Shown: positions 7,244-48,835 of the stretch, one piece after another | How the letters are laid out: every line of letters begins with the position of its first letter | How positions within the stretch are numbered: position 1 is the stretch's first letter | Assembly: GCA_951406725.2 (NCBI GenBank) | Contig: OX597832.1 | Location: forward strand, 50,034,001 to 50,098,000 | Reading direction: 5' to 3' | DNA from: Octopus vulgaris | Lineage: Eukaryota | Length of the DNA: 64,000 bases | The notes under the pieces: model-generated | Told to the model about the DNA's origin: nothing | The model's database searches: none | The model's input: only the letters and a program-made list of their open reading frames with translations | Program-made: the position numbers and the translations under genes

Positions 7244-7486
7244 TTATTTACATTTGACGGATATTTGTCCTCATCTTGTTTGTTGCTAACACAACATTTC
7301 GGCTGATATACCCTTCAGCCTTCATCAGGTGTCTTGGGGGAATTTCGAACATGGGTTCTCAGTCCTAAGGTATTTTTCGATGTTATTATTATTGTTATTA
7401 TTCAGGTCACTGCCTGGAATCAAACTCAGAATCTTAGGGTTAGTAGCCCGCTCTCTTAACCACTACGCCGTATGCCCATGGGCATA
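7244..7486 (-). mobile_element. tRNA-headed SINE carrying a Penelope-type hammerhead (family H, copy 1)
   Basis: Minus strand: palindromic atgcccatgggcat, A-box ggcgtagtggt, gggctactaaccc anticodon-like arm, B-box gagtttgattcc, (AAT)n, HHR, end tccgtcaaatgtaaataat. Confidence 0.8.
7288..7333 (-). ncRNA. Type I minimal hammerhead (HHR2)
   Basis: GACAC CTGATGA A GGCTGA-agggtata-TCAGCC GAA ATGT T GTGTT; 6-bp stem II; stem III ATGT versus ACGT in copy 3. Confidence 0.75.
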
Positions 7487-7789
7487 TTTTCTTATTTTAC
7501 TGGTTTCATTCATTTGACGGTGGCCATGCTAGGACACCACCTTCAAGGGTTTAGGTGATTATCTCAATCCAAGAGCTTATTTCATTTTGGTACTCACCTT
7601 AATCAATCTCTATTTGTTGAGTTGCTATGTTATGGGACATAGGACATGACAATAAAGACAACACCAGTTTCCAAGCCAGTGCAAACATAAACACAGTTAC
7701 GCATCCAGATGTATTTATGTATATTTCTACATACATGCATGCATGTATACCTGCTTACATATGTACATACATAGATACATGCATATTTA

Positions 7790-8006
7790 CAAGGGGGTTC
7801 TGAAAAGTTCCTGGTTTTGTGTAAAAGAAAATACAAGAGGATCAGTTAATTATAATTTTATTCTGCATATTTTCCTCTCAGGTTCACATACTTGTTGCAG
7901 CAGTCCTTCAGTTTTTCTAAGCTCTATAAAAGAACTCAGAACATTGGACCTCCAACCGGGCCATTCGTAATACCTTTAAAGGCAGGAACTTTTCAGCACC
8001 TCCTTG
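7790..8006. mobile_element. mariner-type MITE
   Basis: TIRs caagggggttctgaaaagttcctg / caggaacttttcagcacctccttg, TA on both sides; related pieces at 3087-3117, 26443-26555, 43787-44064. Confidence 0.85.
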
Positions 8007-8032
8007 TACAAATATGCATATGTATGCATATA

Positions 8033-8482
8033 TACTCTTTACTCTTTTACTTGTTTCAGTCATTTGACTGCGGCCGTGCTGGAGCACCACCTTTAGTCGA
8101 GCAAATCGACCCCGGGACTTATTCTTTGTAAGCCCAGTACTTATTCTATCGGTCTCTTTTGCCAAACCGCTAAGTGACGGGGACGTAAACACACCAGCAT
8201 CGGTTGTCAAGCAATGCTAGGGGGACAAACACAGACACACACACACACACACACACATATATTTATATATATATACATATATACGACAAGCTTCTTTCAG
8301 TTTCCGTCTACCAAATCCACTCACAAGGCATTGGTCGCCCCGGGGCTATAGCAGAAGACACTTGCCCAAGATGCCACGCAGTGGGACTGGACCCGGAACC
8401 ATGTGGTTGGTTAGCAAGCTACTTACCACACAGCCACTCTTTTGCCGAACCGCTGAAACAAGTAAAAGAGTAAAAGAGAGTA
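8033..8482 (-). mobile_element. Family A SINE with an inverted second 3' tail at its 5' end
   Basis: Full minus-strand copy, then cttttgccgaaccg plus ctgaaacaagtaaaagagtaaaagagagta (8453-8482), the reverse complement of the tail at 8033. Confidence 0.85.
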
Positions 8483-8801
8483 ATATGTATAGATTGCATC
8501 CACACACACACACACATACATTGCTATATGCACACTCATACTCATACAATATATTACTCACATACCTATACAGACACACAAACATACACAATCATTCTTA
8601 CAGATGTCTCCATCTATCTAAATTTCATTTTTATTATTATTATTCATTCATGTGAAGCTATGTTCACCTGTTATTCGACGCACATCCAATTATTTTAATG
8701 TGATAGAGAGCCATCCGATGGTCAGTTCCTTACACGCAGCATTGACCTTCCTATCCTCAAGGTGAATTCTTAACGCAGAGTTCCCAATTAGCAAAGATGT
8801 T

Positions 8802-8840
<39 letters not shown>

Positions 8841-9068
8841 TTTTTTATATTTTTTTTATTTCACCTCCTCCCACCTCCCCCTTTTGTTTTTTAATTAATA
8901 ATAATGCTAGGTGTTTCTCCTGCTGTTTTCCGATTTCATTTCCTTCTCCCTTCGCCTTCCCTTCCACTTCTCCTTCATCCTTGCTGCCTGAAACCCTCTC
9001 GATGACTCTCTGGAGCGCTCAACCCAGCGGAAACACTTATTGCATGCTGACATCACTTACCGCTTCAT

Positions 9069-9124
<56 letters not shown>

Positions 9125-9681
9125 ATGCATTCTGTCTGCTCTTACACATACATATATGCGTACAGTGTGTGCCCTTACACACACATTCTGTCTGCCCCCC
9201 CCTCTCCACCTTACATGTACATACACACTCATATAATCTGTTCCTATAGACACAATTTAGATTATCTTGGCTGTAAACTACATAAAATCCCATATGTTCA
9301 GTGACAAAATAAACTTTGCTGCTTTTAGTCAGATGCAACAGCAACAACAATAACAACAACAATGGCCATAAAAATGGCATTATCATCATCATCATCATTT
9401 GCAGCAACATCAGTATCAGATTGATTGTTCTATCATCACAAACGTCTTCCAACATTATTCTTTTTAGTATAATTCAGAATAATACTGAATTATATATATT
9501 TTCTCCAAAGAGTTCTATTTTACTTTTACACTAACCAGTATACAATCTTGTAATTTCTTTAACAAGATTACACTTTGCTAATGAGGTTGTAATAATATCA
9601 GAAACGCTCTGAGTTGTCTCCCCATACTTGTCCCCGCAAACAACTGAAACTAAAACTAGTCATTGAATAGAATATTTTTTG

Positions 9682-10021
9682 CCAGAGCAGCCAACTGGCT
9701 TCCGTACAGGTGGCACGTAAAAGGGCACCATTCGAGCGTGATCGTTACCAACGTCGCTTCATTGGCACCTGTGCCGGTGGCACGTGTAAAAAGATTCGAG
9801 CGAAGTCATTGCTAGTACGCCTGACTGGCCCCCGTGCCGGTGGCACGTAAAAAGCACCCACTACACTCTCGGAGTGGTTGGCGTTAGGAAGGGCATCCAG
9901 CTGTAGAAACTCTGCCAGATCAAGATTGGAGCCTGGTGCAGCCATCTGGCTCGCCAGCCCTCAGTCAAAATCGTCCAACCCATGCTAGCATGGAAAGTGG
10001 ACGTTAAACGATGATGATGAT
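9682..10021 (+). mobile_element. RTE-tailed non-autonomous retroposon with tandem hairpin modules (family D)
   Basis: Three ~65-bp modules with gtgccggtggcac, then aggaagggcatccagc...catggaaagtggacgttaaac and (GAT)n tail. Confidence 0.75.
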
Positions 10022-10086
10022 GTTTGCTGAATAATTATTCCTTGTTAGGTTTTTAATATTTACTGTATTAAATACAGTAATATTAA

Positions 10087-10307
10087 CCCTTTAATGTTCA
10101 GATTACTCTGTCAAATGTAATATTCATTTATTCACATTGTTTTTGAATTAATCAAGCATTATCTCATAGACATGAGATTTCGATGATGTAATTGCTTAGT
10201 CTTAGAATGACATTGTAGGGTAGTTGCGAGAGGCAAAATTTGAATGGTTTGAGCATACAATAGGTAAAATATTTGGGCCAGGTACGGCCAGTTTAAATGC
10301 TAAACTG
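10087..10307. mobile_element. piggyBac-like TTAA MITE
   Basis: TTAA flanks and diverged cccttt...aaatgctaaa termini; same family at 14910, 23874, 24290 (inverted), 41213. Confidence 0.7.
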
Positions 10308-10420
10308 TTAACTTTGCTATTGTTTTTCATGCAGATGGCACCTCTGAACTATTTATTCCCTAAAGAATTTTATTTATCAGCAACAACCAATGCACTTTTA
10401 TTTAGTGATTTTCTCATCAA

Positions 10421-10816
10421 TACTTTTTACTCTTGTTTGAGTCATTTTAACTGTGGCCATGCTGGAGCACCGCCTTTAGTCGAGCAAATCGACACCAGGA
10501 CTTATTCTTTGTAAGCCTAGTACTTATTCTATCGGTCGCTTTTGCCGAACTGCTAAGTTACGGTGACGTAAACACACCAGCATCGGTTGTCAAGCGATGT
10601 TGGAGGGACAAACACAGACACACACACATATATATATATACATATATACGACAGGCCTCTTTCAGTTTCCGTCTACCAAATCCACTCTCAAGGCTTTGGT
10701 TGACCCGAGGCTATAGTAGAGGACACTTGCCCAAGGTGCCATGCAGTGGGACTCAACCTGGAACCAACCATATGGTTGGTAAACAAGCTACTTACCACAC
10801 AGCCACTCCTACGCCT
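10421..10816 (-). mobile_element. Family A SINE, full length
   Basis: Co-linear with other family A copies. Confidence 0.9.
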
Positions 10817-11524
10817 TGACTTCTGTTAAGACTATACTTTATAAATGAAGGAGTCATAATAAGGTAGAAACATGCTTGGAGTTATTACACACCTACTTTA
10901 GAAAATGAAAATAATATTAGTCATTCCCTGATATTGTTTCTTTTTCCCTGTCTCATACTTGTTTCTAGTTGGCCCTTTAATAATACTCTCTGCATTAACT
11001 TGATTACCAGCATACAAATACAAAAAAAGCTCAAAAAACAAAACAAAGAAAGTCTTATTTTAATGTGTTCATATTCAAGCTAATATCACATTCCTTCATC
11101 AATTGCCTTTAGTTTGACTTATAGACCAAACATCAGCTTAATGTCTGCAAAGCCGGTTGGCTATGTTACTAAGTCCCTCCAAATTCTTGATTGCTTTCGA
11201 AATTAATTTACACATATTGTTGGAAACAGGGTCACAAAAGAGTTAAATATGTTAACATTAACTTAACTAAAGCATTGAATCTAGAGTTCTATTATGGTGA
11301 CTGAATTGGCTGTTCGGCTTTAATAATTGTAATCTAATAACATAGTATAGCATGTGTGTCTGGTTTTCTGTGTAGCCAGTACATTGAACAACTATCTCTC
11401 CGAGATAGTTGCTATACAATTGATTTTGTTATGTGATTGATTCTATTGATTAATTCTAATCAAGATCTTATTCATATTTCTCCAATACTCATCATTTTTG
11501 ACCAGCTGCTCTACCCTAATAACG

Positions 11525-11563
<39 letters not shown>

Positions 11564-11759
11564 TTTGGTTGTGCTTCTAGGCTGAACAAAAACAATAATA
11601 CTAATTTCAATACAGGGTATTAAATTTTGTGGGAGGAAGTAGCTGATGAAAAATTGACTTTATTGGTACTCTGTTTTATTGAGCAGCATCATAGTTCTCA
11701 TTGCCGTTATCATCATCATCATCATTTAACATCTGCATTCCATTCTGGTATAGATTGGA

Positions 11760-12074
11760 TGTTGGAGAAGACTTTTATGGATTCCATGGACAGCGAGGCT
11801 CACCAATGGAGAAGTTCTTAAGCAGATCAGGCCGAAAATGTCGCTAGAAGCTAGGATTACCAAGCATGGAATGGCATATTTCGGTCATGTTATGCGGAGA
11901 AAATCCCTGGAGAAGGACATCATGCTCGGAATGGTCAGTGGCAAGAGAGGAAAAGGCCGACCAAGAACCCGCTGGCTTGACACCATCAAGAGTGATATCG
12001 GAATGGACATAGCCAGTCTGAAAGAAGCGGGCCAGGATAGAACTGACTGGAGGACACTGATCCAACGAGTAACC
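11760..12074 (+). mobile_element. RTE-BovB clade LINE ORF C-terminal fragment
   Basis: CWRRLLWIPWTARLTNGEVL...YFGHVMRRKSLEKDIMLGMVSGKRGKGRPRTRWLD...DRTDWRTLI, matching the BovB C-terminus pattern; inserted in a reversed RTE-tail repeat, tggatg on both sides. Confidence 0.9.
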
Positions 12075-12854
12075 GTGGATGGTTTGACAGGCTCTGATGA
12101 GTCCAGGGTCTGCATCATGCCCCAGTGTCTACTTTGGCACGGTTTCTTCAGCTGGATGCCCTTCCTAATACCAACCACTTCACAGCACATATTGGTTGCA
12201 TTTTTCATACTTCCAGCTTCTAGTGACGAGTTGACCTGCAGCTTGCAAAGCTATGAATTCTGACGGGGTGACTTTACACTATGAAGTAAATGGTTAAAGT
12301 ACTAGTTAAGGGTCCAAAGCAGAACAGGGTTCTTGCTGTAGAGCTACATGACTACTGGGGTGCTAATGATTCTGCTAGCTTGCTGCTGATAATAATGATA
12401 ATAATGGTTTGAAATTGTGGCACACAGTGAGCTTGGTAGAGGCAGATAAATCACTTACATTGACCCCAGTGTTCAACTGGTACTTATTGTATTGATCTTA
12501 AAAGAAAGAAAGTCAAAGCTGACCTTGGTGGAATTTGAACTCAGAATGCAAAGCCCGAAGAAATACCAGTGAGCGTTTTGTCAGACACACTGACAACTCA
12601 TTGCCTTGATTGTAATAGTGATAATAATAATGGTTTCATATTTTGGCACCAGGCCAGCAATTTTGAGGAGAGGGGCTTAGTTAGTACCATTGACCTCAGT
12701 ATTTGACTAGTACTTTATTTTATTAACCCTAAAATGATGAAAGGTAAAGTTTTCTTCCGTGGGATTTGAACTCAGAATGTAGAGGGTCAGAACAAATCCT
12801 GCAAAGCATTTTCCAACACTTTAATGAGTCTGCCAGCTCACAAACAACATTATA

Positions 12855-13265
12855 CCAGGTTTGGCATATACATTTAACCATTATTTAAACAATAATTTAT
12901 CCATTATTCAAACAGAAATTGAAACGTTCTTATTCACAAAAATTGTTGCAAATGTTGTAAAATGCTTCCTAACATTCTTTTGTTTTATTGTTTACCCTTG
13001 ATTAAATATCGCAGCTCAAACAAAACACGAACAAATTGTAGCATTGAAAATGGCTGGTTTAAAAAGAATCGTGAAGTGATAAAACAGTTGAGAAAAGATT
13101 AAGAGCTATGGTGAAAGCAAAGAGTAGCCATTTTCAATTGTAAATGTATGTAAAATATTGTCAATAAATATCACAGTCAACCTGTAAACTTTCATTAACC
13201 AAAACCTAAAACTTGCTATTCTACAATAAAAATGAATAATGGGCAAATATTTATGCCACACCCAG
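12855..13265 (+). mobile_element. Tc1/mariner internally deleted element
   Basis: Imperfect TIRs with TA flanks; residual C-terminus RLRAMVKAKSSHFQL* resembles the Tc1/maT GGHFE end. Confidence 0.65.
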
Positions 13266-14446
13266 TAGATATTAAGTTCTCTTAGATTAATTCTTATGAC
13301 CTCTACAAAAGACTTGAATGGAAAGAAACTCCCAGAACAACTGATCTTCCTCCCCACCATTCCTGGTTACAATAAAAAGAAAAATGAAAACACACATTTC
13401 GTGTTTCAATCCTTTTTATTAGTTTTTCCCTATTGTTGGCTGTCAATGTCTGGCAGAACGCTCTGGCAATGTTGTTGTTACGTGAAAGAGAAGAACAAGG
13501 TTGCCAACTAGATATTGGAAGAGGAGAACCAATTCGGTTTTCGCTTAGTAAATTTTGTGCTGAAATTATCTATAATAATTGACTCCTTTGATGGAGGGAT
13601 GAGGAAGGAGAGAAAGAGAGAGAGACGTGGTGGTGGTGGTGCTTATTGTCTCTTCCCTACTTACTTTTATATATTCTGGAGTCTGATTCTCCTACACAGA
13701 AGAATTTTAGGGACAATAGTTTGTATGTTCATAAGCATATGACTGTACACACACACACACACACACACACATATGTATACATGCAAATACTACATATATA
13801 TATATTATTTGCATGCATACACATACATGCTCACAATTATTGTTTTTAGTGTATGAATAGATTCTTAAGTGAAGGGGTTTATTTGCTTGTCTGTTTGATT
13901 AATATGTAGATTTTTATGTCTATTTGTGACTTTCACACACACACACACACACACACACGTGTGTGTTGTATTGGTGTGTGTGCATAGAATATATGTTTTG
14001 CTTTGTGTTGTATATAGACATACATACAGGTGCCGGCATGGCTGTTGAATGAGAAGTTCACCTCTTTATAACATGGTTTTGGGTTCAGTACCATTGTGTG
14101 GCATCTTGGGGCCAGTGTCTTCCATTTTAGACCCCAGATTGACCAAAGCCTTGTCAGTGAATTTGGTAGCTGAAAGAAGCCTGTTGTATGTGTGTATATG
14201 TGTGCATGCACGTGTGTGTTTTTTGTGTCTTGTCTTGCCTTGTCCTTCATTTCTTGCTTTGGCCTTTATTTCCAATCTTCTATGAAAACATGTCTGGTTA
14301 CTGGGGGAAATATTATCTTAGTTGGAAACAGCTAAAGGTTGGCAACAGGAAGGGCCTCTGGATGTAGAAAAATCCACCCCAGCAAATTCTTTCTGACCCA
14401 TGCAAGCATGGAAAACTGTTGTTGAAACAATGATGATAATGATAGT

Positions 14447-14759
14447 TTTTTTTTTTTTTTTTGTTCCTTCTTGAGCCATGCCTGGCTCATAAGGGCCGGT
14501 TTCACGGTTTCTTGGCATATAGGTTCCCCACCTGGACGGGACACCGGTCCATCGCAGGTGAGCTGCAATATGCAGGAGGAAAGAGTGAGAGAAAGTTGTG
14601 GCGAAACAGTCAGCAGAAATTCGCCATTATCTTTTGCCGGAGCTGCGTGGAGCTTAGGTGTTACGCTCATAAACACACACATCGCCCGGTCTGAGATTCG
14701 AACCTGCGATCCCGCGACCGCGAGTCCGCTGCTCTAACCACTAGGCCATGTGCCTCCAC
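14447..14759 (-). mobile_element. tRNA SINE with V-like domain and poly-A tail (family C)
   Basis: tggcctagtggtt A-box, ggttcgaatctc B-box, cctgcgatggaccggtgtcccgtccag; TSD gataatg(a/g)tagt. Confidence 0.85.
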
Positions 14760-14909
14760 GATAATGGTAGTGACGAGTCAAAAATCTGGTTGATTCTCGA
14801 TTTAAGTGCTTGCTTTACTTATAACAGTTAGCTGTATCTCTATCTGTATGGCACCTATTACTGCAAGGTATTAAGATTTAGATCTGACATGAGCCCTAAA
14901 ATTCTTCAC

Positions 14910-15120
14910 CCTTTAGCTTTCAGATTCTTTTGTCAAATTTAATCCTTATTCATCCACATTTCTTTGAATTACCCACAATTATCTCATAACTGCAATTTTT
15001 TGATGAGGTAACCATTTATTTTTAGGATGACATTGTAGGGTAGGTGTGAGAGGCTGGATCTTGCCAGTTTAAATATAAATCATATTTGGGCTGGATATGG
15101 CCAGTTTGAATGCTAAAGGA
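14910..15120. mobile_element. piggyBac-like MITE, diverged
   Basis: ccctttagc ... gctaaaggattaa with family body. Confidence 0.6.
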
Positions 15121-15859
15121 TTAAAGCCAGAGTTTAACCTGTTTTCTATGGCATATAAGGGACTGAGAATTACAATACTCCCTCATCCCCCACTGATACC
15201 CTACAAACCATATAAACAAAAGCTTAATGCAGTTGCTGTACCTGCTAGAAATAGCAGCGAAATCTTGCTCACATCATGCTCTAAGCAGCTTAAAAAGAAA
15301 GAAAGGAAGAACACAGAATAGTAATGGTTTTGGGTGCATGAGATGGAATGTTTGTAGCTGGAATGCTTTTCGTTGTGGGGTTGCTCAGTCAGGACCGATG
15401 TGGAGGGAATCAATAACGAGAATATCAGCAAAAAACCAAACAAAACAGATGAAAAATCATGAAGAGTCAGTTAAAATATCTTTTCCAGAGATTACAAGTG
15501 CTGGTGATGCGATACGAACCATTGACTTTTTTCACTTGTTGGGCAAGCAACCAACTGATTCAGCCCCTGCTGGAACCTTTCTTAGTTGGGAGGGTTTTTT
15601 TTTTTTTTGCTTTTAAAAAAATAGATATATTAGACATATAAAAAGAAAGGAAAAGAAAACAAACAAACAAAAAGAAAAGCAAAATAAGATGAAAATTCAC
15701 TGCTTAATTTCCCAGAGTCCAAAATTTTCTCTTTGGTGGTGTGAAAACTAAATGAATGTCCTACTTTCACTCCCATCATCTCTTCTTGCCTGTTCACTCA
15801 AGTATTAATTCTTCTTCGCTAAATTACACTGTACGTTGGTTTGGAGTGGTTTGTCTATA

Positions 15860-16043: not shown

Positions 16044-16086
<43 letters not shown>

Positions 16087-26692: not shown

Positions 26693-27122
26693 TAGGCATG
26701 ACTGTGTGTTAAGAAGCTTGCTTCTTAACTACATGGTTCTGGGTTCAGTCCCAGTGTGGCACCCTGGGCAAGTGTCGTTTACTATAGCCTCAGGCCGACC
26801 AAAGCCTTGTGAGTGGATTTGGTAGATGGAAACTGAAAGAAGCCCACTGTATATGTGTGTTTGTGTGTATATATACACACACATATGTGTGTGTCTTTAT
26901 CATTGTGTTTGTCCCCCACCACTGTTTGACAAAGTGTAGATGTGTTTACGTCCCCATAACTTAGCAGTTCAGCAAAGAGGGACCAATAGAATAAGTACCA
27001 GGCTTTAAAAAAAAAAATTAAAAGTCCAGGAGTCAATTTGTTTGACTAAAATCCTTCAAGGCAGTTGGTGCCCCAGCATGGCCACAGTCAAATGACTGAA
27101 ACAAGTAAAAGAATAAAAGAAT
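26693..27122 (+). mobile_element. Family A SINE, full length
   Basis: A/B boxes, CORE-like segment, (AAAAGAAT) tail. Confidence 0.85.
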
Positions 27123-28439: not shown

Positions 28440-28915
28440 ATATTTCATTTTTGGATTTGGTTTGCAAGATTCTTTATGTGAGTTTGTGTGTTGAAGCATA
28501 TTCTGTTGTGTCTGGGGAGAGTCATTTTCTTTTTGTGCCTTATAATTTAACACACTCACCGGTAAAAATTTTTATTTTCCTAAAATTTTTGTTGCGCCTT
28601 GCAACCTTTTCAATAACCTCTTAACCCATTTCTTTATTACCCACAAGGGGCTAAACATAGAAGGGACAAACAACGACAGACATAGGTATTAAGTCGATTA
28701 CATCGACCCCAGTGCGTAACTGGTACTTAATTTATCGACCCCGAAAGGATGAAAGGTAAAGTTGACCTCAGCGGAATTTGAACTCACAACGTAACGGCAG
28801 ATGAAATACCACTAAGCATTTCGCCCGACGTGCTAACGTTTCTGCCAGCTCGCCGCCTTTTAACCACTATGCCATATACCTGTGGGCATATCGTGTAGTG
28901 GAAACAAAAAGAAGA
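28440..28915 (-). mobile_element. Family H-headed element with alternative body, interrupted by a family B SINE (28627-28860, minus)
   Basis: Head ccactatgccatatacctgtgggcatatcgtgtagtgg at 28864-28900 shared with 31400; body shared with 48860 and 63470; ttaacc on both sides of the SINE. Confidence 0.65.
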
Positions 28916-29432
28916 AACTAAATCTTAAAACATTCCTAACAATTACTTACAATGTTAATTACAACAACGAGGCCTTGATAATGTGCTTGTTTACATGCTG
29001 ACATTGTGAGGCTCTGTTTCCACATTCTCTCTGTTCCTCTTTCATCCTGAAACTTTAGAATTTATTAACCCTTTCAATCAGAGTTGCTAATTTAGCCAAT
29101 TTCTAGCTAGATCCAGCATATTTTAATTACAACGTAGCTAATGAAAATAGCCCACCTAACAGATAGCTATAAACCTAGTTAATTCTAAAAATAACATAGC
29201 GCATGCTAATTAGTTTTCCCTCATTAAATTTCTTTTTAGTTTTATTGTTTTTGTTTTAGTTTTGTTGTTTTCTTTTGTTATGGTGAAGGCCCATGGCCTT
29301 GTGGTTAGGGTATTTGGCTTGTGATTATAAAGTCATAGGTTCAGTCCCTAGACCAGCCAGAGTGTTGTGTTCTTGTGTAGGTCACATCATTTCATGTTGT
29401 TCTAGTCCAAGGATTCTCGGCCTTTTTTCTAT

Positions 29433-30546: not shown

Positions 30547-31206
30547 TCTTAGAGGAAAGTTTGCAGGAAAGCTACGAATGGGGTTGGAATTGTAGGGGTT
30601 TGATCCTCTGGGAGAAGAGTCATTGGCATAGAAACTAGGAATGGCAGGATGTGGAGATGAGATAAATTATGAGTAACAAGAGGAATAGTGATGCTTGAGG
30701 TGATAATGAACTAAATAGATCTGGGAAGAGGGTGCTTCAGGTGGGGAGAAAAATATGGCTTTGGGCCAAGTCTGAAGCAGGTCATGTGAAATCCTAAAAA
30801 AGTCGCTCTGTCATCATCTATGGTTTATCACCAATTTTCATGGGCCTGAACTATTAAGTGAACAATAGGTTACTAATCTGTAACAGGTAACTATTTTCTC
30901 ATGGCTCACCACCATCTCTATCTCTGTCTGTCTGTCTCTCCCTTCCTCCCTCTCTCCAGCTGCAGTAGCTTGAGTCAACCTGGGGCTTATAGTAGAAGAC
31001 ACTTGTCCAAGATACCACATAGTAGGTTTGAGCCTGTGTATTTGCCCTCCACCACTGCTTGATAACTGGTGTTGGTTTGTTTACATCCCATGACTTAGAG
31101 GTCTGGCAAAAAGAGTCGAATAGTCTGTGATTGTTCGTTCAACTGAATCCTTCAAGGTGGTGCCCCAGCAAGGCCACAGTCCAGTGCTTGAAACAAATGA
31201 AAAGAA

Positions 31207-31460
31207 TTATTTACATTCGACGGATATTTGTCCTCATCTTGTTCATTGTTAACACAACATTTCAGCTGATATACCCTCCATCCTTCTTCAGGTGTCTTGG
31301 GGGAAATTTCAAACCTGGGTTCTCATTCCTAAGGTATTTTTCGATGTTTACTTGGAATCGAACTCGGAATCTCGAGGTTAGTAGCCCGTGCTCTTAACCA
31401 CTATGCCATATGCCCATGGGCATATGGCTTAGTGGAAATAAAAAGAAGAAACTAAATCTT
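31207..31460 (-). mobile_element. Family H SINE with hammerhead (copy 2)
   Basis: Same architecture as 7244-7486; 22-bp perfect palindrome at head; B-box gagttcgattcc. Confidence 0.8.
31251..31296 (-). ncRNA. Type I minimal hammerhead (HHR3), stem II partly decayed
   Basis: GACAC CTGAAGA A GGATG-gagggtatat-CAGCT GAA ATGT T GTGTT. Confidence 0.6.
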
Positions 31461-31710
31461 AAGCACGTAGCCACAAATGCGTCTACATATGAAAGATAAC
31501 AGTCAAAGCCTCTTTGACCAGAGGTGTGTCCTAAAAGGGCTGAGCTGGTGCTAAACAGATACAGATATAATAACACTGGGCCCATGTGAGAGGAAAAAAC
31601 AAACTGTAGACATGTTGGTTTCAAAATATGGCTCAAGGCCAGCAATTTCAGGGGAGGGGATAAGTTGATTACATTGACCCCCATGCTTAACTGGTACTTA
31701 TTTCATTGAC

Positions 31711-31946
31711 ATATAAGGTGGCGAGCTGGCAGAAACGTTAGCACGCCGGGTGAAATGCTTAGTGGTATTTTGTCTGCGTTACGTTGTGAGTTCAAATTCC
31801 GCTGAGGTCGACTTTGCCTTTCATCCTTTCGGGGTCGATAAATTAAGTACCAGTTACGCACTGGGGTCGATGTAATCGACTTAATACCTATGTCTGTCCT
31901 TGTTTGTCCCCTCTGTGTTTAGCCCCTTGTGGGTAATAAAGAAATA
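31711..31946 (+). mobile_element. Meta-like SINE (family B), 18-bp TSD, nested in an older reversed SINE
   Basis: TSD ggtacttatttcattgac at 31693-31710 and 31947-31964. Confidence 0.9.
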
Positions 31947-32843: not shown

Positions 32844-33105
32844 GTGGAGGCGCATGGCTTAGTGGTTAGGGTGTCAGCACCATGATCATAAGATTGTGGT
32901 TTCGATTCCTGGACCGGGCGACGAGTTGTGTTCTTGAGCAAAACACTTCATTTCACATTGCTCCAGTCCACTCAGCTGGCAAAAATGAGTAACGCTGCGA
33001 TGGACTGGCGTCCCGTCCAGCTGGGGAACACATACGCCATAGAAACTGGGAAACCAGGCCCATGAGCCTGGCTAGGCTTTAAAAGGGCGCATTTATTTAT
33101 TATTA

Positions 33106-39790: not shown

Positions 39791-40337
39791 GAATGCAAAG
39801 GCACATGGCCTAACGATTAAGGTACTGCATTTATGATTGTCAAGACTGTGGTTTCAATTCCCAGTGCATTGATGATGATGATGATGCTTCATGTTTGGAA
39901 TAATATTTAAAGTAAAATTTAATGACATGTGATCAGTAAATAATAAAGCTATAACAGTAATTAAAATATTTTTCCTGTTTACTCATGGAATGTAGATAGA
40001 TATGTAACTCCCTTTAAAAAATGTGCAAAAATGAGGCAAGGAGATGTAAATATGAGATGTAAATAATCAGTGCAGTTTGGGTATCTGATCATTATGGATG
40101 GTTGCTGGGATGTGCATTTGTAGTCCACACAATCTTTGAATGATCACTCATCTGTGTTATCATAGATCAATTCATGATAAGCGTAACGTGGTTCACAGTT
40201 GAGCATACCATGTTATCTCGGATCAGTGATGAATGAAAAATTGGAAGCCATATTGTTTTCTGTGTTGATTTTACATTATGGGTAAATTCACACACATACA
40301 CACACTCACTCCTCACTCTGTGTAATTATATATACGT

Positions 40338-40487
40338 ATAGGTGCAAGCATGGCTGTGTGATAATAAGCTTGCTTCTCAACCACATGGTTCCAGGTTCAG
40401 TCCCACTGTATGGCACCTTGGGCAAGTGTCTTTTATTATAGCTTCAGCAAGGGGATTTAGTGGGCAGAAACTGAAAGAAGCCCATCC

Positions 40488-40529
<42 letters not shown>

Positions 40530-40790
40530 TATACATACATACATACATACATACACATATATGTGTGTGTGTGTGTGTATCTGTGTGTCTCCTACCATCA
40601 CTTGACAACTGATGTTGGTGTGTTTACATCCTTGTAATTTAGTATTTCAGCAAAAGAGACAAATAGAATAAGTACAAAGCTTACAAAGAATAAGTCCTGG
40701 GGTCGATTTGTTTCACTGAAAAACCCTTTAAGGCGGTGCTCCAGCATGGCCACAGTCAAATAACTGAAACAAGTAAAAAAAATAAAAGGA
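40338..40790 (+). mobile_element. Family A SINE
   Basis: A/B boxes, CORE-like segment, tail. Confidence 0.85.
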
Positions 40791-40860
40791 TATATGAGGA
40801 CCAGCTGGAAAGCTCATAGGCTGACCAAAATACTCACGTGAAATGCAGACCAAATTAGGT

Positions 40861-41185
40861 TTATTTTTCAACATAGTCTCCCTTGCAGTCCACACATTTC
40901 TTCCATGAGGGTTGCAGTGCTTGGTTCCCATTCTAGAAGAAGCTTTCATTCTGTTGGTCAAAAATATCATCAACAGCAGACATGATGTCATCATCACTGC
41001 GATACTGGTTCCCAGCCAAGTTTTTTTTTTTATGTTGAAGAACAGATGATAGTCAGATAGGGCCAGATCAGGAGAACAGGGAGAGTGATGAACCAGTTCA
41101 AAGTCACAGCCATGCACACCAGCCATTGAAATGAAGGACTTGTGTCCTGGAGCATTGCCCTGATGAAACAAAACCCCTTTCGTTA
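40861..41185 (-). pseudogene. mariner (DD34D-type) transposase C-terminal relic
   Basis: LFHQGNAPGH...HHSPCSPDLALSDYHLFFNIKK / LAGNQYRSDDDIMSAV...WKKCVDCKGDYVEK*, with a frameshift in a T-run; TIR-like end and TA at 40793. Confidence 0.9.
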
Positions 41186-42129
41186 ATACCATATATTAAA
41201 AAATTTAAATAGTTAACATTCAGATTACTCTGTCAAATGTAATACTTATTTATTCACATTGTTTTGAACTAATCAGGCATTGGCTCGTAGCTTGAAGATT
41301 TCAATGATGTGATTGTTTCTTTTTAAACTGACATTGTAGGGTAGGTGTGAGAAGCTGGATTAGGTCAGTTTGAGCATAAAACTGATAGAATATTTTGGCC
41401 AGATATTTTAAAGGGTTAATGCCTAGTTGTTTTTCTATTATAAGACATATTACTTGGTTTTACTTCAATCTGTCTAGATTAAGGGAAAAAAATGTACTTG
41501 ACTTTATGGTTGAGCAGGCAGTTGGCACTAGACAGCCGTTAAAATACTTGCTTCAATAATTTGGCATTGCAAAAATATCCAGATTTCTACAAATTCCCTA
41601 CCTTTAGTAGCTTGGAAAAAATTGGATGCAAAAAAAAAAATGTATTAAAACATTTCTGCTGCTCCTCCCCCACTACTATAAAAATATCAACATACCAGTA
41701 TATAGAGTTTCATAGCAGATTTAAGAACATTTAGTTCAGAATATATTCTCTGTTATTGCTTTTAAAAAAGCCAAAAAAATATCTATTTTTTAAAATTATT
41801 TTTAACATTGGAACTCACAGAAGATAAAGCTTATAAACAATAGCTAGCATGTAGAGAATATTAGGTTAAAAACCCCCTTGGAAAGAAGAATGTCCCACAG
41901 GTAGCCATAGACGTATTTGTTTTCAAGGTTTTTTTTTTTTTTAATTCTAATATTCAATATGCTATTGCTTCATAGCTTTATCTTCTTTGAGCTTCGATGT
42001 TTAAAATAATTTACTTCATATTTGTTGAAGTTTCTGAATTCTTAAAATGTAAATATCTTTTATTTATTCATCTGTTTGTTCATTTAATTTGTCGGATGGC
42101 AAAGCTTTCTCATCCCTGTTTCATTAGAT

Positions 42130-42354
42130 TACTCTTTTACTTGTTTCAGTCTTTTGACTGTGGCCATGCTGGAGCACCACCTTTAATTGAGCAACTCGAC
42201 CCCGGGACTTATTCTTTGTAAGCCCAGTTCTTATTCTATCGGTTTCTTTTGCCGAACTGCTAAGTGACGGGGACATAAACACACCAGCATCGGTTGTCAA
42301 GCAATGCTAGGGGGACAAACACAGACACACAAACATACATGCACACACACACAC

Positions 42355-42411
<57 letters not shown>

Positions 42412-42579
42412 TACGACAGGCTTCTTTCATTTTCCGTCTACCAAATCCACTCACAAGGTTTTGGTTGGCCCGAGGCTATAGTAGAAGACACTTGCCCAAG
42501 GTGCCACGCAGTGGGACTGAACCCGGAACCATGTGGTTGGTAAACAAGTTACTTACCACACAGCCACTCCTGCGCCTAT
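42130..42579 (-). mobile_element. Family A SINE, full length
   Basis: Co-linear with consensus. Confidence 0.9.
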
Positions 42580-43120
42580 ATTGTTAAATATTACAAATAT
42601 GGAAGCAATCAGAATTGACTCCGGGGAAGACAACAACCAGCAGTATTTTACAACAGGATGCTTTACTTGGTGCTGGTCCTCTTCGTTTTCCAATGAAGTG
42701 CTTTATTCCACAACTTTACCAAAGCCATTCGTGCTGTTAGATTTTGTGTCTATGTGGGACATAAACATCACCTCAGCTGGCTGAATGGCGTCAGAGTAAA
42801 GACATGCATACATACAAGGTTTCCATACAGTTTCCATCTACCTAATCAAACTCACAAGGCATTGGTCAACTGTGACAGAAGACACTCAAGGTACCACACT
42901 GCCACACAATAGGACTGAACTTAAAAGCCTGTGGTTGTGAGGCAAACTTCACAACCACACAGCCATATCTGTACCTAGCCTACATGCCATGTCTGCATCT
43001 ATATTCCATATCTGCACTTATAATATTTGAAAATAAGATGGAATGGTCATGTTTGGACTTCCTTTGTCATGAATCTGCCCAATAGGAACTGACTTGGTGC
43101 TGAACAATGACAACAGTATC

Positions 43121-43352
43121 TATTTCTTTACTACCCACAAGGGGCTAAACACAGAGGGGATAAACAAGGACAGACAAACAGATCAAGTCGATTATATTGA
43201 CCCCAGTGTGTAACTGGTTCTCATTTAATCGACCCTGAAAGGATGAAAGGCAAAGTCGACCTCGGCGGAATTCAAACTCAGAACGTAATGGCAGACAAAA
43301 TACCGCTAAACATTTCGCCCGGCGTGCTAACGTTTCTGCCAGCTCGCTGCCC
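43121..43352 (-). mobile_element. Meta-like SINE (family B), 14-bp TSD
   Basis: TSD atgacaacagtatc at 43107-43120 and 43357-43370. Confidence 0.9.
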
Positions 43353-43536
43353 TGCCATGACAACAGTATCAAGTTCATAATATGTGTGTGTGTGTAATAA
43401 ACACAATATATGTTGTGTTGTTTTCATTGCATGAAACTGTTACTAGCTTACAAAAATATATACTGTGTTCATTAAACAATATTTATCTCTCACCAGGTGG
43501 ATTACTTTGTTGATCTTACCTTCATGGAACAGTATA

Positions 43537-43761
43537 CAGTAATCCCTTGACTATCACGGGTGTTATGTTCCAAAACCCCACACGATGGGTGAAAATCTGT
43601 GAAGTAGAAATAGTACTGTGCTGTATATTTAAAAAAAAATTATTTTCATAATTTGTATATATTTATTTTATTATAAATGCAAGACAACACTACAGGGGAA
43701 AAGACGTAAGCTTAGATAATAAAGCACGATAGGTGACCTGTGATATGGCGAGGGGTTCCTG
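43537..43761. mobile_element. Tigger/pogo-type MITE
   Basis: TA|cagtaatcccttgactatcacgg ... ctgtgatatggcgaggggttcctg|TA; inverted sister copy at 46905-47123. Confidence 0.75.
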
Positions 43762-44092
43762 TATTACATATATGTATGTAGATATACAATGGAGTGCTGA
43801 AAAATTCTTGGTTTTGGGTAAAAGAAAATACAGGAAGATCAGTTAATTATGGTTTTATTCGACATATTCCCCTCTCAGATTCACATAATTATTGCAGCAG
43901 CCCTCCAGTTTTTCTAATCCCTGTAGAACTTGGATGGTTGGGCCTCCAACCAGGCTTTTTGTGATACCCTTAAATATAACAAAATAATTTGATAAAAAAT
44001 GTGAATTTTTAATTATTTTCTGAGATTTTACAAAAACAACAAAAATATTTTTTCAGCACCCTGTCATGTGTGTGTGTATATGTGTATATATA

Positions 44093-44482
44093 TACTCTCT
44101 TTACTCTATTACTTGTTTCAGTCATTTGGCTGGAGCACCGCCTTTAGTCAACCAAATTGATCCCAGGACTTATTCTTTGTAAGCCTAGTACTTATTCTAT
44201 CGATCTCTTATGCCGAACTGCTAAGTTACAGGAACGTAAACACACCACCATCAGTTGTCAAGCAATGTTGGGTGGGGGGGACAAACAGACGCTCGTACGT
44301 ATGTACGTACGTATGTACGTACATACATACATACATACATACATATACGACGGGCTTCTTTCAGTTCCGTCTACCAAATCCACTCACAAGGCTTTGGTTG
44401 GCCCGAGGCTATAGTAGAAGACACTTGCCCAAGGTGCCATGTGGTTAGTAAGCAAGCTACTTACCACACAGCCACTCTTGCG

Positions 44483-44486
<4 letters not shown>
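44093..44486 (-). mobile_element. Family A SINE
   Basis: Co-linear, small internal deletions. Confidence 0.85.
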
Positions 44487-44519
<33 letters not shown>

Positions 44520-45068
44520 TTGCAGTTAGAACAGGTTTTGTTGTCAGAAGTGTAATATTACAGTTCTGTATCTCCAAGGCATTGGCTATCTCTCCAACAC
44601 AACAGCAGCCAACCACCACTTCTAGTGTTTTTCTCTCTTTTTAACACCATAGTCATAGTATTATTCATTCACACACACACACACACACACACAAGAAGAG
44701 CTCTTCACTCCTATCATTTAGCTCTGACTGCTGCTGCTGTTAACAAATCATGCATAATGAAGAAGTGGATTGTTTGGCTATCTAGAATATCATTACTGTG
44801 TGCATCCATTAATTATAATCATTAACATCACAATATCGCATTCTTGCTACCTAAAGGCTAATTAAAGTTGTAACTATGAGTTAATGCTATAATAGACTTC
44901 TCCCTTCAGATTCACCTATAACCTTTTCTTTTTTTTTTTCTTTTTTATTGTTGTTGTTGTTTGCTGTTTTGTTTTTGGTTTTTGGAAAATAGGTTCTTGT
45001 TTACTCTTAGATTCTGTGAATTGTGCAGAGTTTTACTAGTTTTGTAAGTAACTCTCATACACAAGGAG

Positions 45069-45480
45069 CTCTTTTACTCTGTTACTTGTTTCAGTCATTT
45101 GACTGTGGCCATGCTGGAGCACCGCCTTTTAGTCGAGCAAATCGATCCCCAGGACTTATTCTTTGTAAGCCTAGTACTTATTCTATCGGTCTCTTGTACC
45201 GAACTGCTAATTTACGGGGACGTAAACACACCAGCATCGGTTGTCAAGAGATGTTGGGGGAACAAACACAGACACACAAACATACACACACATGCATATA
45301 TATACACATATATACAACGGGCTTCTTTCAGTTTTTGTCTACCAAATCCACTCACAAGGCTTTGGTCGACCCGAGGCTATAGTAGAAGACACTTGCCCAA
45401 GATGCCACGCAGTGAGACTGAACCTGGACCCATGTGGTTGGTAAGCAAGCTACTTACCACACAGCCACTCCTGCGCCTAT
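45069..45480 (-). mobile_element. Family A SINE, full length
   Basis: Co-linear with consensus. Confidence 0.9.
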
Positions 45481-46267
45481 TTGGTTATATACACATTACC
45501 TAAAAAAAAAAAAGGACTGGGTGGTCATGATTGGAATGATTCTGATCATATATATCTACTCAATCATGGTTGACCTGGATCTAAATGACAGCAATAGTAA
45601 CTACAAAAGCAGTATGTTGAAGAGATGGTGATTTTTCAAGATATGTTTATTTCAAGAATAATTCAGAAGTGCTGAACTATTTAACTTAAATTTTGGCAAT
45701 ATGATTTCAATTTAAAGAAGAAAAAAAAAAGTATTACACGACACAGAATAGGAACTAATTAATTGTATTTAAGAACATTTATTTTTTTCACGGATTTTAG
45801 CCCTTTACAGAGAATATGCTAATTTAAGAGAGGAAATATTGTTTCTACACAGTTGGAGGTCAGCTTCAGTGTTGCAAGATTCTTTGGTAAAACGGGTGCT
45901 GGCATTCTTGATGTAGTAAACCAAGGGATTTCCATTAATTAATTAAAATTATACCCTTAGTTATAAGAACAACCATTGTTTAAAGAATTCTATTTGGAAA
46001 AGGAAAAACAAAACTCAACAAAACAATTGCAGGGAATACAATGTGAAATTTTAATTAATTAAAAGGAATTAAATATGTAATGCAGTGACGAGTGAGTATG
46101 AATTTTGGCACCATGGTGATAATTCTGGATAGATTTTGCCATTTCACTTCTACTTTGACTTCATCAGTAAAGCATTGTCCAATTTTACCTGCAAAAACTT
46201 TAAAATAACTAAATGCATATATATGTATATATGTGTAATGTATATATATTTATTGTATGTATAGATA

Positions 46268-46302
<35 letters not shown>

Positions 46303-46325
46303 ATGTATGTATGTATGTATGTATG

Positions 46326-46365
<40 letters not shown>

Positions 46366-46693
46366 CCTGCTCACTTAGCCAGCTGGGTGGCGTCATTTGA
46401 AGGCTAAAACAATGCGAATTGCATTGTGACCAGCGATGTGTAGCAACATCTGATAGCCTGGTCAGTCATGTGATCACATGATATATATATATATAAATTA
46501 GAGAAAAACCACTATTCTGCAATTCAAACAATGATAGACATAAACCAAATCATAAAGAAAAATAAAATATAAAGCAAATAACTAGATCACAAAAAGTACA
46601 AAAATGAATAAACAATATATAATAAGTAATATAATGTTATACATTGCTTATTTATTATATATATATATATATATATATTTGTGTGTGTATGTG

Positions 46694-46739
<46 letters not shown>

Positions 46740-46904
46740 TGTACAAATATATATGAGAAAGAGAGAAGCAATTATGTGGATAAACAAATTAAATATAACA
46801 ACTTGGGTTTGATATACAAAATATGTATATGTGTATACATGTAAAATGAGAGAAAGTAAAGATTGAAGACTTTCAGACGATGTATATTTAAGTATAGATA
46901 TATA

Positions 46905-47123
46905 CAGTAATCCCTAACCCTATCACAGTTCACCTATCTTAGTTTGTTATTTAAGCTTTTGCCAATTCCTCCATGGCGTTGTTTGCATTTATGATAAAAT
47001 AAATATATACAAATTATAAAAATAAAAAAATGTATACAGTATAGTACTGTTTCTACTTTGCGAATTTTCACCTATCGTTGGGGTTTTTGGAACATAATAC
47101 GTGCGAAAGTCGAGGGATTATTG
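46905..47123. mobile_element. Tigger/pogo-type MITE, inverted relative to 43537
   Basis: TA|cagtaatccct ... cgagggattattg|TA; body is the reverse complement of the 43537 copy. Confidence 0.75.
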
Positions 47124-47426
47124 TAGATATTTATATTAATAGGTCCAATTTACATAAAGTACAAGTGACAAAGAAAATTAAGGGAGAAGAGCTAAGGTGT
47201 TATAAGTTCAACAGCTGTTTCTGGGGGCTCAGATATCCATCACGACATTGGTAGATGTAGTTCATCACAATGTGCAGGCCATAATGGAAGCAAATAAGCA
47301 TTGGATAAATTGAGCTTCCATCATCAGGGTGGAAAAATATCTTACATTTCCGATTATGATGCAGAGAAGTTTTAAGGTGGAATGTTTAAATGTAGAGAGC
47401 CAGCTGTATTGTGTGTGTATGTGTGC

Positions 47427-47470
<44 letters not shown>

Positions 47471-47476
<6 letters not shown>

Positions 47477-47827
47477 GAGTGGCTGTGTGGTAAGTAGTTT
47501 TGGGCAAGTGTTTTCTACTATAGCCTCGGGCCGACCAAAGCTTTGTGAGTGGATTTGGTAGATGGAAACTGAAAGAATCCCGTCATGTATATATATATAT
47601 ATGTGTTTGTGTGTGTGTAGAAATGTTTGTGTGTTTGTTTGCCCCTCCACCATTGCTTGACAACAGATTTTGATGTGTTTAAGTCCCAGTAACTTAGCAG
47701 TTTGGCAAAAGAGACTGATGGAATAAGTATTAGGCTTATAAAGAATAAGCCCTAGGGTCGATTTGTTTGACTAAAGGCAGTGCTCCAGCAAGGTTGCAGT
47801 CAAATGACTGAAACAAATAAAAGAATA
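47471..47827 (+). mobile_element. Family A SINE with deletion in the head
   Basis: Co-linear with consensus. Confidence 0.85.
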
Positions 47828-47939
47828 TATATATACATACACATACATGCATACACACACGTTTTAATTTTTTTTCAAAGCCTAAGCAATGCAAGTTATA
47901 AGAAATAATGTAAGTTGATGGTTTGTACTTTTACCTTGC

Positions 47940-47979
47940 ATTTTAATATTTCGGGCTTACAACCCCTTCTTCAGGAAAT
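47940..47979 (-). ncRNA. Decayed hammerhead (HHR6)
   Basis: atttc CTGAAGA A GGG-gttgtaag-CCC GAA ATAT T aaaat; ATAT can derive from ACGT by CpG decay. Confidence 0.5.
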
Positions 47980-48384
47980 CTTTGGAGGAATGTGATCTGA
48001 CTTCAGAGAAATCAGCTCACATCAAATTAGCATGAAATCTTGATGCAAGCTTTAAATTAGCTCACTTTAAAGCAGGAGGTTTTGTATCATAAAACTAATG
48101 GTAGTCTCAGGCAAGTTGCTATCAAAAGAATTCAAATATAGAATAGGATAGGAAATAGAATGCAAAATAAATGGCTAATATTCTGAATATCTGAACTATT
48201 CTAAACAATTACATACATCTTTGTTATTAGCGATTTTCAGTAATTTTGATATAATTATAAATAGAAAAGAATAAAAGAGGTAAACTTTCCGTAAGACCGA
48301 GTTGATAACAGAGATTCAGTTCCTGGTTGCTGCCATTTCACTTCAGGTACATTGCTAAATTCTTTGAGACTGAAAGCTGAAAAC

Positions 48385-48835
48385 ATTATTTACATTTGAT
48401 GGATATTTGCCCTCATCTTGTTTGTTGACAACGTTTCGGCTGATATACCTTCTAGCCTTCATCAGGTGTCTTGGGGGAAATTTCGAACCTGGGTTCTCAT
48501 TCCTAAGGTATTTTTTGATGTTATTATTATTATTATGTTTTTTCTTCTTTCTTCAAATTTTTTTCCATTTCTTGCCGAGTGTTTTCCATACACCTAGGGC
48601 AGAGAAGCTCATTGCATGCATTCCCAGATTACATGCGCAAATTCACAGACAAAATATGTATTTAAAAATTAATAAATAAATAAATTCATGGATGGATGTT
48701 ATTTTCACAGCGATAATGCTCTACTACTATTATTATTATTATTATTATTATTCAGATCACTGCCTGGAATTGAACTCGGCATCTTGGGGTTAGTAGCCCA
48801 CGCTCTTAACCACTGCGCTATATGCCCGTGGGCTG
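48385..48835 (-). mobile_element. Family H SINE with hammerhead (copy 3), extra sequence in its (AAT)n
   Basis: Head at 48760-48835, 3' part at 48385-48535. Confidence 0.75.
48427..48470 (-). ncRNA. Type I minimal hammerhead (HHR7), intact core
   Basis: GACAC CTGATGA A GGCT-agaaggtatatc-AGCC GAA ACGT T gtc; ACGT palindrome intact, stem I shortened by deletion. Confidence 0.7.

Follow-up and report, generated by a model that had tools for sequence, protein, structure and literature searches.

The closest described relatives of the element reported here are the minimal hammerhead ribozymes (min-HHRs) of Penelope-like elements (PLEs) (Cervera & de la Pena 2014, PMC4209133). Their class features are an unpaired nucleotide between A9 and G10.1, a G10.1–C11.1 pair, no loop 3, a palindromic 15.2–16.2, a helix I of 4–5 bp and, in most, a longer helix II, for which 4–8 bp serves as the class criterion. 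We describe a short interspersed nuclear element (SINE) of ~240 nt in a 64,000-nt stretch of Octopus vulgaris DNA, hereafter the window (contig OX597832.1, positions 50,034,001–50,098,000; coordinates below are window positions). It shares with PLE min-HHRs the conserved boxes, the unpaired nucleotide between A9 and G10.1, the G10.1–C11.1 pair, the lack of loop 3 and the A-C-G-U palindrome, as well as a short helix I (5 bp) with a longer helix II (6 bp), a position ~50 nt from the repeat 3′ end, and occurrence as dispersed single copies; moreover, its core and helix II sequence is the same as in contigs with open reading frames (ORFs) for reverse transcriptase (RT) and GIY-YIG domains. The known min-HHRs, however, lie in the pseudo-long terminal repeat (pLTR) flanking the PLE ORF, whereas here the motif occupies the tail of an element headed by a tRNA-like promoter of RNA polymerase III (Pol III) type, and not the pLTR of an RT plus GIY-YIG element.

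The Sm-alpha and Sj-alpha elements of Schistosoma (Ferbeyre 1998 and Laha 2000, via PMC6765202) are likewise short non-autonomous retroposons that combine a Pol III promoter with a hammerhead. According to PMC6765202, Sm-alpha has a canonical, efficiently cleaving type I hammerhead and often forms tandem arrays that release units, whereas the octopus SINE carries a minimal hammerhead without helix III, near its 3′ end and past an (AAT)n tract, and occurs as monomers with target-site duplications (TSDs). Metazoan non-LTR retrozymes are also non-coding and hammerhead-bearing, and are thought to parasitize PLE machinery (PMC7229834; Li et al. 2026 preprint, 10.64898/2026.07.22.740005), but they are tandem 170–400-nt repeats with type I hammerheads, whose units are freed by two cuts and circularized, and they lack a Pol III head (Cervera & de la Pena 2020, PMC7229834); the copies reported here are single, with one hammerhead each and no tandem arrangement. 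An initial annotation of the window had called the family a SINE/retrozyme hybrid; we retain a Pol III-headed SINE with a PLE-type motif, and drop “retrozyme” because the copies are dispersed monomers. The octopus tRNA SINEs OK, OR1, and OR2 (Ohshima & Okada 1994, cited in PMC4824008) also have an A/B-box head, short length, TSDs, dispersed copies, and a composite head–body–tail build. Known SINE tails are 3′ ends of long interspersed nuclear elements (LINEs), as opposed to the PLE-type hammerhead found here; the comparison with OK, OR1, and OR2 is by description. Our literature search turned up neither a tRNA-headed SINE whose tail is of PLE type nor any link between hammerheads and cephalopods. 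Single-copy dispersed min-HHRs (very common), Schistosoma hammerhead SINEs, and PLE-dependent tandem retrozymes are known already, and what appears to be new is the combination of a tRNA head with a PLE-type tail.

BLAST of each copy against the window retrieves the three copies where they had been annotated, at 7244 (c1), 31207 (c2), and 48384 (c3, annotated at 48385), all on the minus strand, and adds one partial copy (c4). The annotated 5′ palindrome, A box, GGGCTACTAACCC arm, B box, and hammerhead motif are all there; the (AAT)n linker is present in c1 and c3 only, having been deleted from c2. Pairwise identity among c1, c2, and c3 is 80–90%, and the order of parts is the same: palindrome, tRNA-like head, (AAT)n, a segment of ~90 nt, the hammerhead-like motif, and a 44-nt 3′ end with the terminus AAATGTAAATAA(TG). 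The tail, beyond the (AAT)n linker, is ~140 nt with a mean column identity of 92% in the alignment, and the head-to-tail junction (..TAACATCGAAAAATACC) is identical in all three copies. These lie 17–24 kb apart, each single, with no tandem arrangement by BLAST and repeat analysis of the window. The features of the family are as follows.

7244..7486, minus strand: copy 1 (c1), full-length composite of 243 nt (BLAST and alignment).
7471..7486, unstranded: c1 5′ palindrome TATGCCCA/TGGGCATA with 8–9-nt arms, 100% complementary, 0 nt between the arms.
7412..7477, minus strand: c1 head, tRNA-like, in which the box-pair scan finds an A box (..GGCGTAGTGG) and a B box (GAGTTTGATTCC).
7383..7402, minus strand: c1 (AAT)n linker from head to tail (sequence reading, alignment).
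7288..7333, minus strand: c1 minimal hammerhead, the sole strict descriptor match in the window.
7244..7287, minus strand: c1 3′-terminal A/C-rich segment past the hammerhead, with a competing hairpin UGUUGU/GCAACA (139-nt fold).
31207..31435, minus strand: copy 2 (c2), without (AAT)n and ~26 nt (BLAST, alignment).
31417..31435, minus strand: c2 19-nt inverted 5′ leader, 19-nt arms, 95% complementary.
31195..31206, unstranded: c2 3′-side TSD AAATGAAAAGAA, 11/12 match to 31436–31447.
31436..31447, unstranded: c2 5′-side TSD AAATAAAAAGAA, 11/12 match to 31195–31206.
31251..31296, minus strand: c2 hammerhead remnant with core intact, helix II broken, and AUGU (alignment).
48384..48831, minus strand: copy 3 (c3) overall, head and tail split by an insert (BLAST, alignment).
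About 48753–48831, minus strand: c3 head, followed by (AAT)n, a 196-bp insert, and (AAT)n.
48384–48520, minus strand: c3 tail (alignment).
48376..48383, unstranded: c3 3′-side TSD GCTGAAAA, 8/8 with 48832–48839.
48832..48839, unstranded: c3 5′-side TSD GCTGAAAA, 8/8 with 48376–48383.
48428..48470, minus strand: c3 hammerhead remnant (relaxed descriptor match and alignment).
48537..48732, minus strand: 196-bp insert inside the c3 (AAT)n, unique, with no second copy in the window.
28857..28928, minus strand: partial fourth copy (c4), with a head of 26 nt, an inverted leader of 19 nt, and a 27-nt flank that it has in common with c2 (BLAST).

The TSDs sit exactly at the outer ends of the whole composite (11/12 nt in c2, 8/8 nt in c3), and head and tail therefore moved as one unit. 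Copy c1 is inserted in another repeat, R, at its A-rich 3′ tail, and the c1 TSD is ambiguous (possibly TAAAATAA), while c4 is cut off by another SINE at 28675–28862. By BLAST, no tail without a head occurs in the window, and nothing else there, including any LINE fragment, shares the tail. The insert within c3 is a second hit on the same (AAT)n microsatellite, and its T5 and T4 runs would stop Pol III.

The head contains an A box TGGCGTAGTGG (consensus TRGCNNAGTGG) and a B box GAGTTCGATTCC (consensus GGTTCGANNCC) at a tRNA-like spacing of ~33 nt, with the GGGCTACTAACCC arm present as well. A box-pair scan picks up c1 and c2, and the boxes of c3 are recognizable by eye. The sense strands of c1 and c2 have no run of four or more T, so Pol III could read through both. 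The usual traits of a tRNA SINE, namely an internal Pol III-type promoter, short length, lack of coding capacity, dispersal, and flanking TSDs (c2 and c3, with c1 ambiguous), are present together, and support the assignment of the element, as judged from its sequence, to dispersed non-coding repeats with a tRNA-like head of putative Pol III type.

The motif common to the three copies is GACAC-CUGANGA-A-GGCUG..CAGCC-GAA-A(C/U)GU-U-GUGUU, and it ends 44 nt from the element 3′ end, in line with the ~45 nt originally given. We scanned both strands of the window with a strict min-HHR descriptor that asks, in order, for a helix I with 4 bp or more, CUGANGA, 0–1 extra nucleotide, a helix II that also has 4 bp or more and a G–C closing pair, GAA, A, pairable 15.2/16.2, U, H, and the helix I partner strand. 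The sole match is c1 (7288–7333), and a relaxed version adds c3. The strict descriptor has no match in 40 Mb of first-order Markov random sequence, and an analytic estimate gives ~4e-5 chance matches expected per window. The c1 motif (GACAC-CUGAUGA-A-GGCUGA..UCAGCC-GAA-AUGU-U-GUGUU) matches every sequence feature by which PLE min-HHRs were defined in PMC4209133. Its core and helices I (GACAC/GUGUU, 5 bp) and II (GGCUGA/UCAGCC, 6 bp) are intact, with a bulged A, U17, and a predicted cut between 7293 and 7292, and it has AUGU where ACGU is expected (15.2 C>U); in isolation, its 52-mer forms both helices (−15.1 kcal/mol, z −2.7). Copy c2 has CUGAAGA (a change at the free position N7), a 5-bp helix I, and AUGU, and its helix II contains an A/G mismatch plus a G–U at 10.1–11.1; its motif does not fold as a hammerhead (z +0.34). 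In c3 the core is intact and the ACGU palindrome perfect, helix II runs for 4 bp before a mismatch, and a 5-nt deletion takes most of the helix I 3′ strand, leaving 2 bp.

Throughout these changes the invariant core bases (C3-U4-G5-A6-N7-G8-A9, G12-A13-A14, A15.1, U16.1, H17) are kept in all three copies, with U at position 17 and A as the unpaired nucleotide between A9 and G10.1. This last nucleotide is conserved in PLE min-HHRs, and the “extra A” is therefore a class hallmark, not an anomaly or defect. The initial annotation had excused it by reference to the hammerhead of chrysanthemum chlorotic mottle viroid (De la Pena & Flores 2001, cited in PMC4209133), which also has an extra nucleotide there; that comparison is unneeded, the PLE min-HHR being the better match, and the viroid ribozyme belongs to type III, possesses a stable helix III, and comes from an unrelated context. 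The annotated stem III sequences are correct, with ACGU in c3 and AUGU in the other two copies. The accompanying claim that the predicted ribozyme would probably require dimers agrees with the literature and with computed self-duplex energies of −1.7 kcal/mol for ACGU and +2.6 kcal/mol for AUGU, which is weakened. Within the three-copy family we see decay only and no compensatory change, and the window copies are, to judge by their alignment, neutral fossils with one helix damaged in each: 15.2 C>U in c1, helix II and 15.2 in c2, and helix I in c3.

The Rfam hammerhead families (type I, II, and III, HH9, HH10) give no match to the window copies at the gathering threshold, nor at E ≤ 10 on 321 nt. 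In a control, Rfam also misses the motif in 6/6 motif-bearing public loci, including L067 of the GIY-YIG-linked L049 family, and its silence on the window copies therefore carries no weight.

Relatives of the motif were sought in public metagenome contigs with a pattern made of the core and helix II (CTGATGAAGGCT-N8-14-AGCCGAAAYGT), which matched at least 120 contigs. Some of these carry animal genes (UNC80, an FMO-like exon), so that at least those contigs are animal host DNA. Among 126 public motifs, residue 17, which the pattern leaves unconstrained, is never G (C in 111, U in 13, A in 2), and ACGU is found in 116 versus AUGU in 10; the extra A occurs in 126/126, but is fixed by the search pattern. 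Helix I differs by family yet stays complementary (UUCAA/UUGAA, UCCC/GGGA, GCC/GGC, and GUC/GAU, beside GACAC/GUGUU in the SINE). Matched strands pair over a mean of 4.0 bp, as compared to 0.64 bp for strands mismatched between families; of 20 000 permutations, 1 attains the observed value. In a 13-sequence alignment the helix I covariation score is 0.425 versus 0.149 for shuffled alignments (0/500 as high), slid registers score at most 0.129, and 5/5 pairs vary on both sides across public families. This covariation is that of public families with the same core; the three SINE copies themselves only decay.

Three public families have the motif a short way downstream of a GIY-YIG ORF and in the same orientation. 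One of them, L059, has an ORF with RVT_1 and GIY-YIG domains above Pfam cut-offs; in L049 and L074, GIY-YIG falls below the Pfam cut-off with clear sequence motifs, and the ORFs are 54 and 242 nt upstream of the hammerhead. Similarity between copies of the GIY-YIG-linked families stops 48–80 nt past the motif, and that of the SINE stops at 50 nt. In BLAST, the hammerhead is all that connects the SINE tail to L023, L059, and L049, and an offset alignment with L090 (AACAAACAAGA..GAGGACAAATAT versus AACAACAAGAGTCAGAGGCAAACAT) is suggestive only. A general A/C-richness of the post-hammerhead segment was considered and is not borne out across families (0.49 vs 0.49). A tRNA-like head was found within 400 nt of the motif in none of the at least 120 public loci, save for one weak, chance-like match. 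As far as sequence comparison can establish kinship, these data show that the SINE motif is kin to PLE-linked hammerheads, with a fit not due to chance.

The dominant public family (L003–L122, e.g. L018:2923–2955) accounts for most of the matches and reads CGGAAGTCAGTC-CUGAUGA-A-GGCUUCCGACGUGAAGCC-GAAACGUC-GAUAAACAGUAUG; its conservation spans about −230 to +75 relative to the motif, and Rfam detects none of its motifs. Seven loci (L044, L046, L073, L087, L109, L111, and L118) have two copies of the same min-HHR on opposite strands, ~150–1700 nt apart, matching inverted arrangements described for Penelope insertions.

We consider it rather probable that the family is a composite SINE, made of a tRNA-derived head, (AAT)n, and a ~140-nt tail that ends like a PLE 3′ end (min-HHR plus ~45–50 nt), and that it was spread by PLE machinery; Pol III transcription, PLE mobilization, and any cleavage of the SINE are steps that we infer. 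An older tRNA SINE may have received a PLE 3′-terminal fragment in its (AAT)n tail. Such a target would suit PLEs, because their endonuclease prefers AT-rich DNA and ATT, with reverse transcription starting inside the RNA without target homology (PMC11167929), and because PLEs favor microsatellites (PMC8557442). The chimera would then have spread as a unit, transcribed by Pol III from the head, with the PLE RT/GIY-YIG protein recognizing the tail and copying the RNA into new sites to yield TSDs of 8–12 bp, and with the hammerhead carried along as part of the PLE 3′ module. Any cleavage would occur after GU-U, ~45 nt from the 3′ end, and would need two RNAs in a domain-swapped dimer joined via the ACGU palindrome, as proposed for other PLE min-HHRs. 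Cleavage by min-HHR dimers was reported by Lunse, Weinberg, and Breaker in 2017. For other min-HHRs, cleavage in vitro is weak (PMC4209133). Penelope is among the abundant repeat families common to coleoid cephalopods (PMC8967140), so a partner element is plausible if the window is coleoid.

Several observations weigh against this account. The 43 nt that follow the hammerhead have no significant similarity to those of PLE-linked families (best z 2.2), and tblastn with three PLE ORFs finds no PLE coding remnant in the window (best E 1.6); the autonomous Penelope (RT plus GIY-YIG) with the same 3′ end that the initial annotation had envisaged was accordingly not found there. ARAGORN predicts 0 tRNA genes in the head and Rfam reports no tRNA there at E ≤ 10; examined by hand, the cloverleaf is degenerate, with an anticodon stem of only 3 bp and no 3′ acceptor strand, which is usual for old SINE heads. 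When the 139-nt tail is folded, the helix I 3′ strand prefers the downstream hairpin. Across the three copies the hammerhead region is conserved no better than its surroundings, as would be expected from neutral decay after insertion. A hammerhead cut would part the head from the 3′ end that the reverse transcriptase needs, so a monomeric SINE would have no obvious benefit from cleavage. TSDs of 8–12 bp at A-rich sites and an AAATGT-like 3′ end fit LINE-mediated retroposition as well. The comparison within the SINE family rests on the three window copies: a non-hammerhead tail segment (ATACCTTAGGANTGAGAACCC) had 0 matches in metagenome, viral, and prokaryote-genome collections, and the antisense ORF of the SINE had 0 matches in a protein collection.

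Some of these points belong to an alternative that we regard as unlikely, though worth keeping in view, by which the family is a LINE-dependent tRNA SINE with a tail of RTE, CR1, or L2 type, and the hammerhead-like stretch is an inert passenger or relic with no Penelope role. The TSDs of 8 and 12 bp at A-rich targets and the location of c1 and c2 in the A-rich tail of another repeat would fit it, as would the AAATGTAAATAA(TG) end, beyond which c1 has AAATGT-like repeats. Such a 3′ end resembles the tails of stringent-type LINEs. No PLE was detected in the window, where two ORFs (11838–12263 and 61318–61617) look RTE-like and CR1-like, respectively, by motif reading with no Pfam match, and a repeat survey finds RTE and CR1 abundant in cephalopods (PMC8967140). 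Against LINE dependence, the motif fits the PLE min-HHR class in every diagnostic feature, far beyond chance, and its distance to the 3′ end is the same as in PLE-linked copies; no LINE fragment in the window shares the tail, and the min-HHR families that have a nearby ORF have RT/GIY-YIG ORFs, not APE-type LINE ORFs.

The composite might also be an illusion created by two separate repeats, a short tRNA SINE ending in (AAT)n and an independent PLE-derived solo fragment, monomeric and retrozyme-like, that repeatedly inserted in that microsatellite. This we hold to be improbable: while the preference of PLEs for microsatellites and AT-rich/ATT sites, the 196 bp that separate head from tail inside the (AAT)n of c3, the tail-less head of c4, and the lack of a microsatellite in c2 all speak for it, the junction of head and tail is the same in all three copies, head and tail never differ in orientation, the TSDs of c2 and c3 enclose head plus tail as a unit, the window has no headless tail, and c4 was cut by a later SINE insertion. 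That the CUGANGA...GAAA stretch and its flanking complementarity are a coincidence within an AT-rich repeat, with no kinship to hammerheads, we judge exceedingly improbable. It could draw on the lack of any Rfam hammerhead match even at E ≤ 10 and on the strict descriptor being passed by only 1/3 copies, but it would have to accommodate a descriptor that never matches random sequence, an Rfam that is equally blind to all six control loci, and at least 120 public contigs that share the core and helix II, covary in helix I, and never have G at residue 17.

SINEs are textbook LINE parasites. It is possible, and we suggest it only tentatively, that the octopus family is the first SINE to parasitize PLEs rather than LINEs, joining a Pol III tRNA head to a PLE 3′ module with a dimer-type hammerhead. 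PLEs make up a third class of retroelements, with a mechanism that is just beginning to be understood, and the non-autonomous elements known to depend on them are tandem retrozymes. If the proposal is true, the SINE defines a minimal RNA for the Penelope RT/endonuclease, of roughly 140 nt including the hammerhead, and provides a natural setting in which to ask whether mobilization requires the hammerhead or simply carries it along; it would also mean that SINEs can arise in a new way, when a PLE end inserts into a microsatellite tail, with the (AAT)n linker as the scar of the founding PLE insertion and the 5′ palindromes of 5, 9, and 19 nt as records of hairpin-primed second-strand synthesis at each integration. 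Should Repbase or Dfam already list the family, on the other hand, and the tail come from a LINE, the result reduces to a further dispersed min-HHR relic. For annotation, Rfam-based pipelines overlook a whole, very common hammerhead class.

The 5′ palindrome has no spacer and is centered on CCCA|TGGG. Its arms measure 8–9 nt in c1 (7471–7486), 19 nt in c2 (31398–31435), ~5 nt in c3 (48823–48834), and 19 nt in c4 (28864–28901), and the TSD abuts the outer arm. Either the palindrome is encoded by a master element, with 5′-truncated copies, or it is made at each integration by hairpin-primed second-strand synthesis. The partial copy c4 (28857–28928, minus strand) has in common with the c2 region 31391–31462 not only leader and head but also 27 nt of 5′ flank (96% identity); this common flank reflects either local duplication at the c2 locus or a subfamily that extends further in the 5′ direction, and in the latter case the c2 TSD call would need re-examination.

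Other repeats in the window include a second family of tRNA-like SINE heads (AGGCGCATGGCCTAGTGGTTAGAGCAGCGGACTCG...GGGTTCGAATC), which has good A and B boxes and no associated hammerhead motif, at the following sites.

14695–14755, minus strand: second-family head with A and B boxes.
32848–32908, plus strand: second-family head with A and B boxes.
58117–58178, minus strand: second-family head with A and B boxes.
61845–61905, plus strand: second-family head with A and B boxes.

An abundant repeat ending in ..GGTGCTCCAGCATGGCCACAGTCAAATGACTGAAACAAGTAAAAGA, often followed by GTAAAGA-like repeats, occupies at least 12 window sites (examples: 27050–27113, 40722–40782, 2447–2498, 42133–42186, 49039–49092, and 8043–8093), and its A-rich tail hosts both c1 and c2, which face opposite ways relative to the repeat. 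Another SINE (GGCGAGCTGGCAGAAACGTTAGCAC...) has copies at 28675–28862 (minus strand) and 31712–31898 (plus strand) that are 95% identical, the first of which truncates c4.

Pfam gives no significant match for six window ORFs. By their motifs, we take the ORF at 11838–12263 (plus strand) to be RTE-like (GRPRTRW...), that at 40728–41192 (minus strand) to be mariner-like (HHSPCSPDLA.SDYHLF), and that at 61318–61617 (minus strand) to be CR1-like (LSYEERL..L.L.SLE.RR.RGDLI). Used as a query, the RTE-like ORF had 11 matches; a 492-kb NCBI contig among them is unrelated to the window, and a 1-kb Logan contig (run ERR11630394) has 84% DNA identity to the window RTE-like repeat (11838–12263) and no SINE copy. 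Most of the long ORFs listed for the window stem from long microsatellite and low-complexity tracts, which are (ATT)n-like, G/A-rich, or (TA)/(TG)-rich and lie at 21.9–22.5 kb, 24.9–26.5 kb, 27.6–28.1 kb, 34.3–34.9 kb, and 53.2–56.4 kb.

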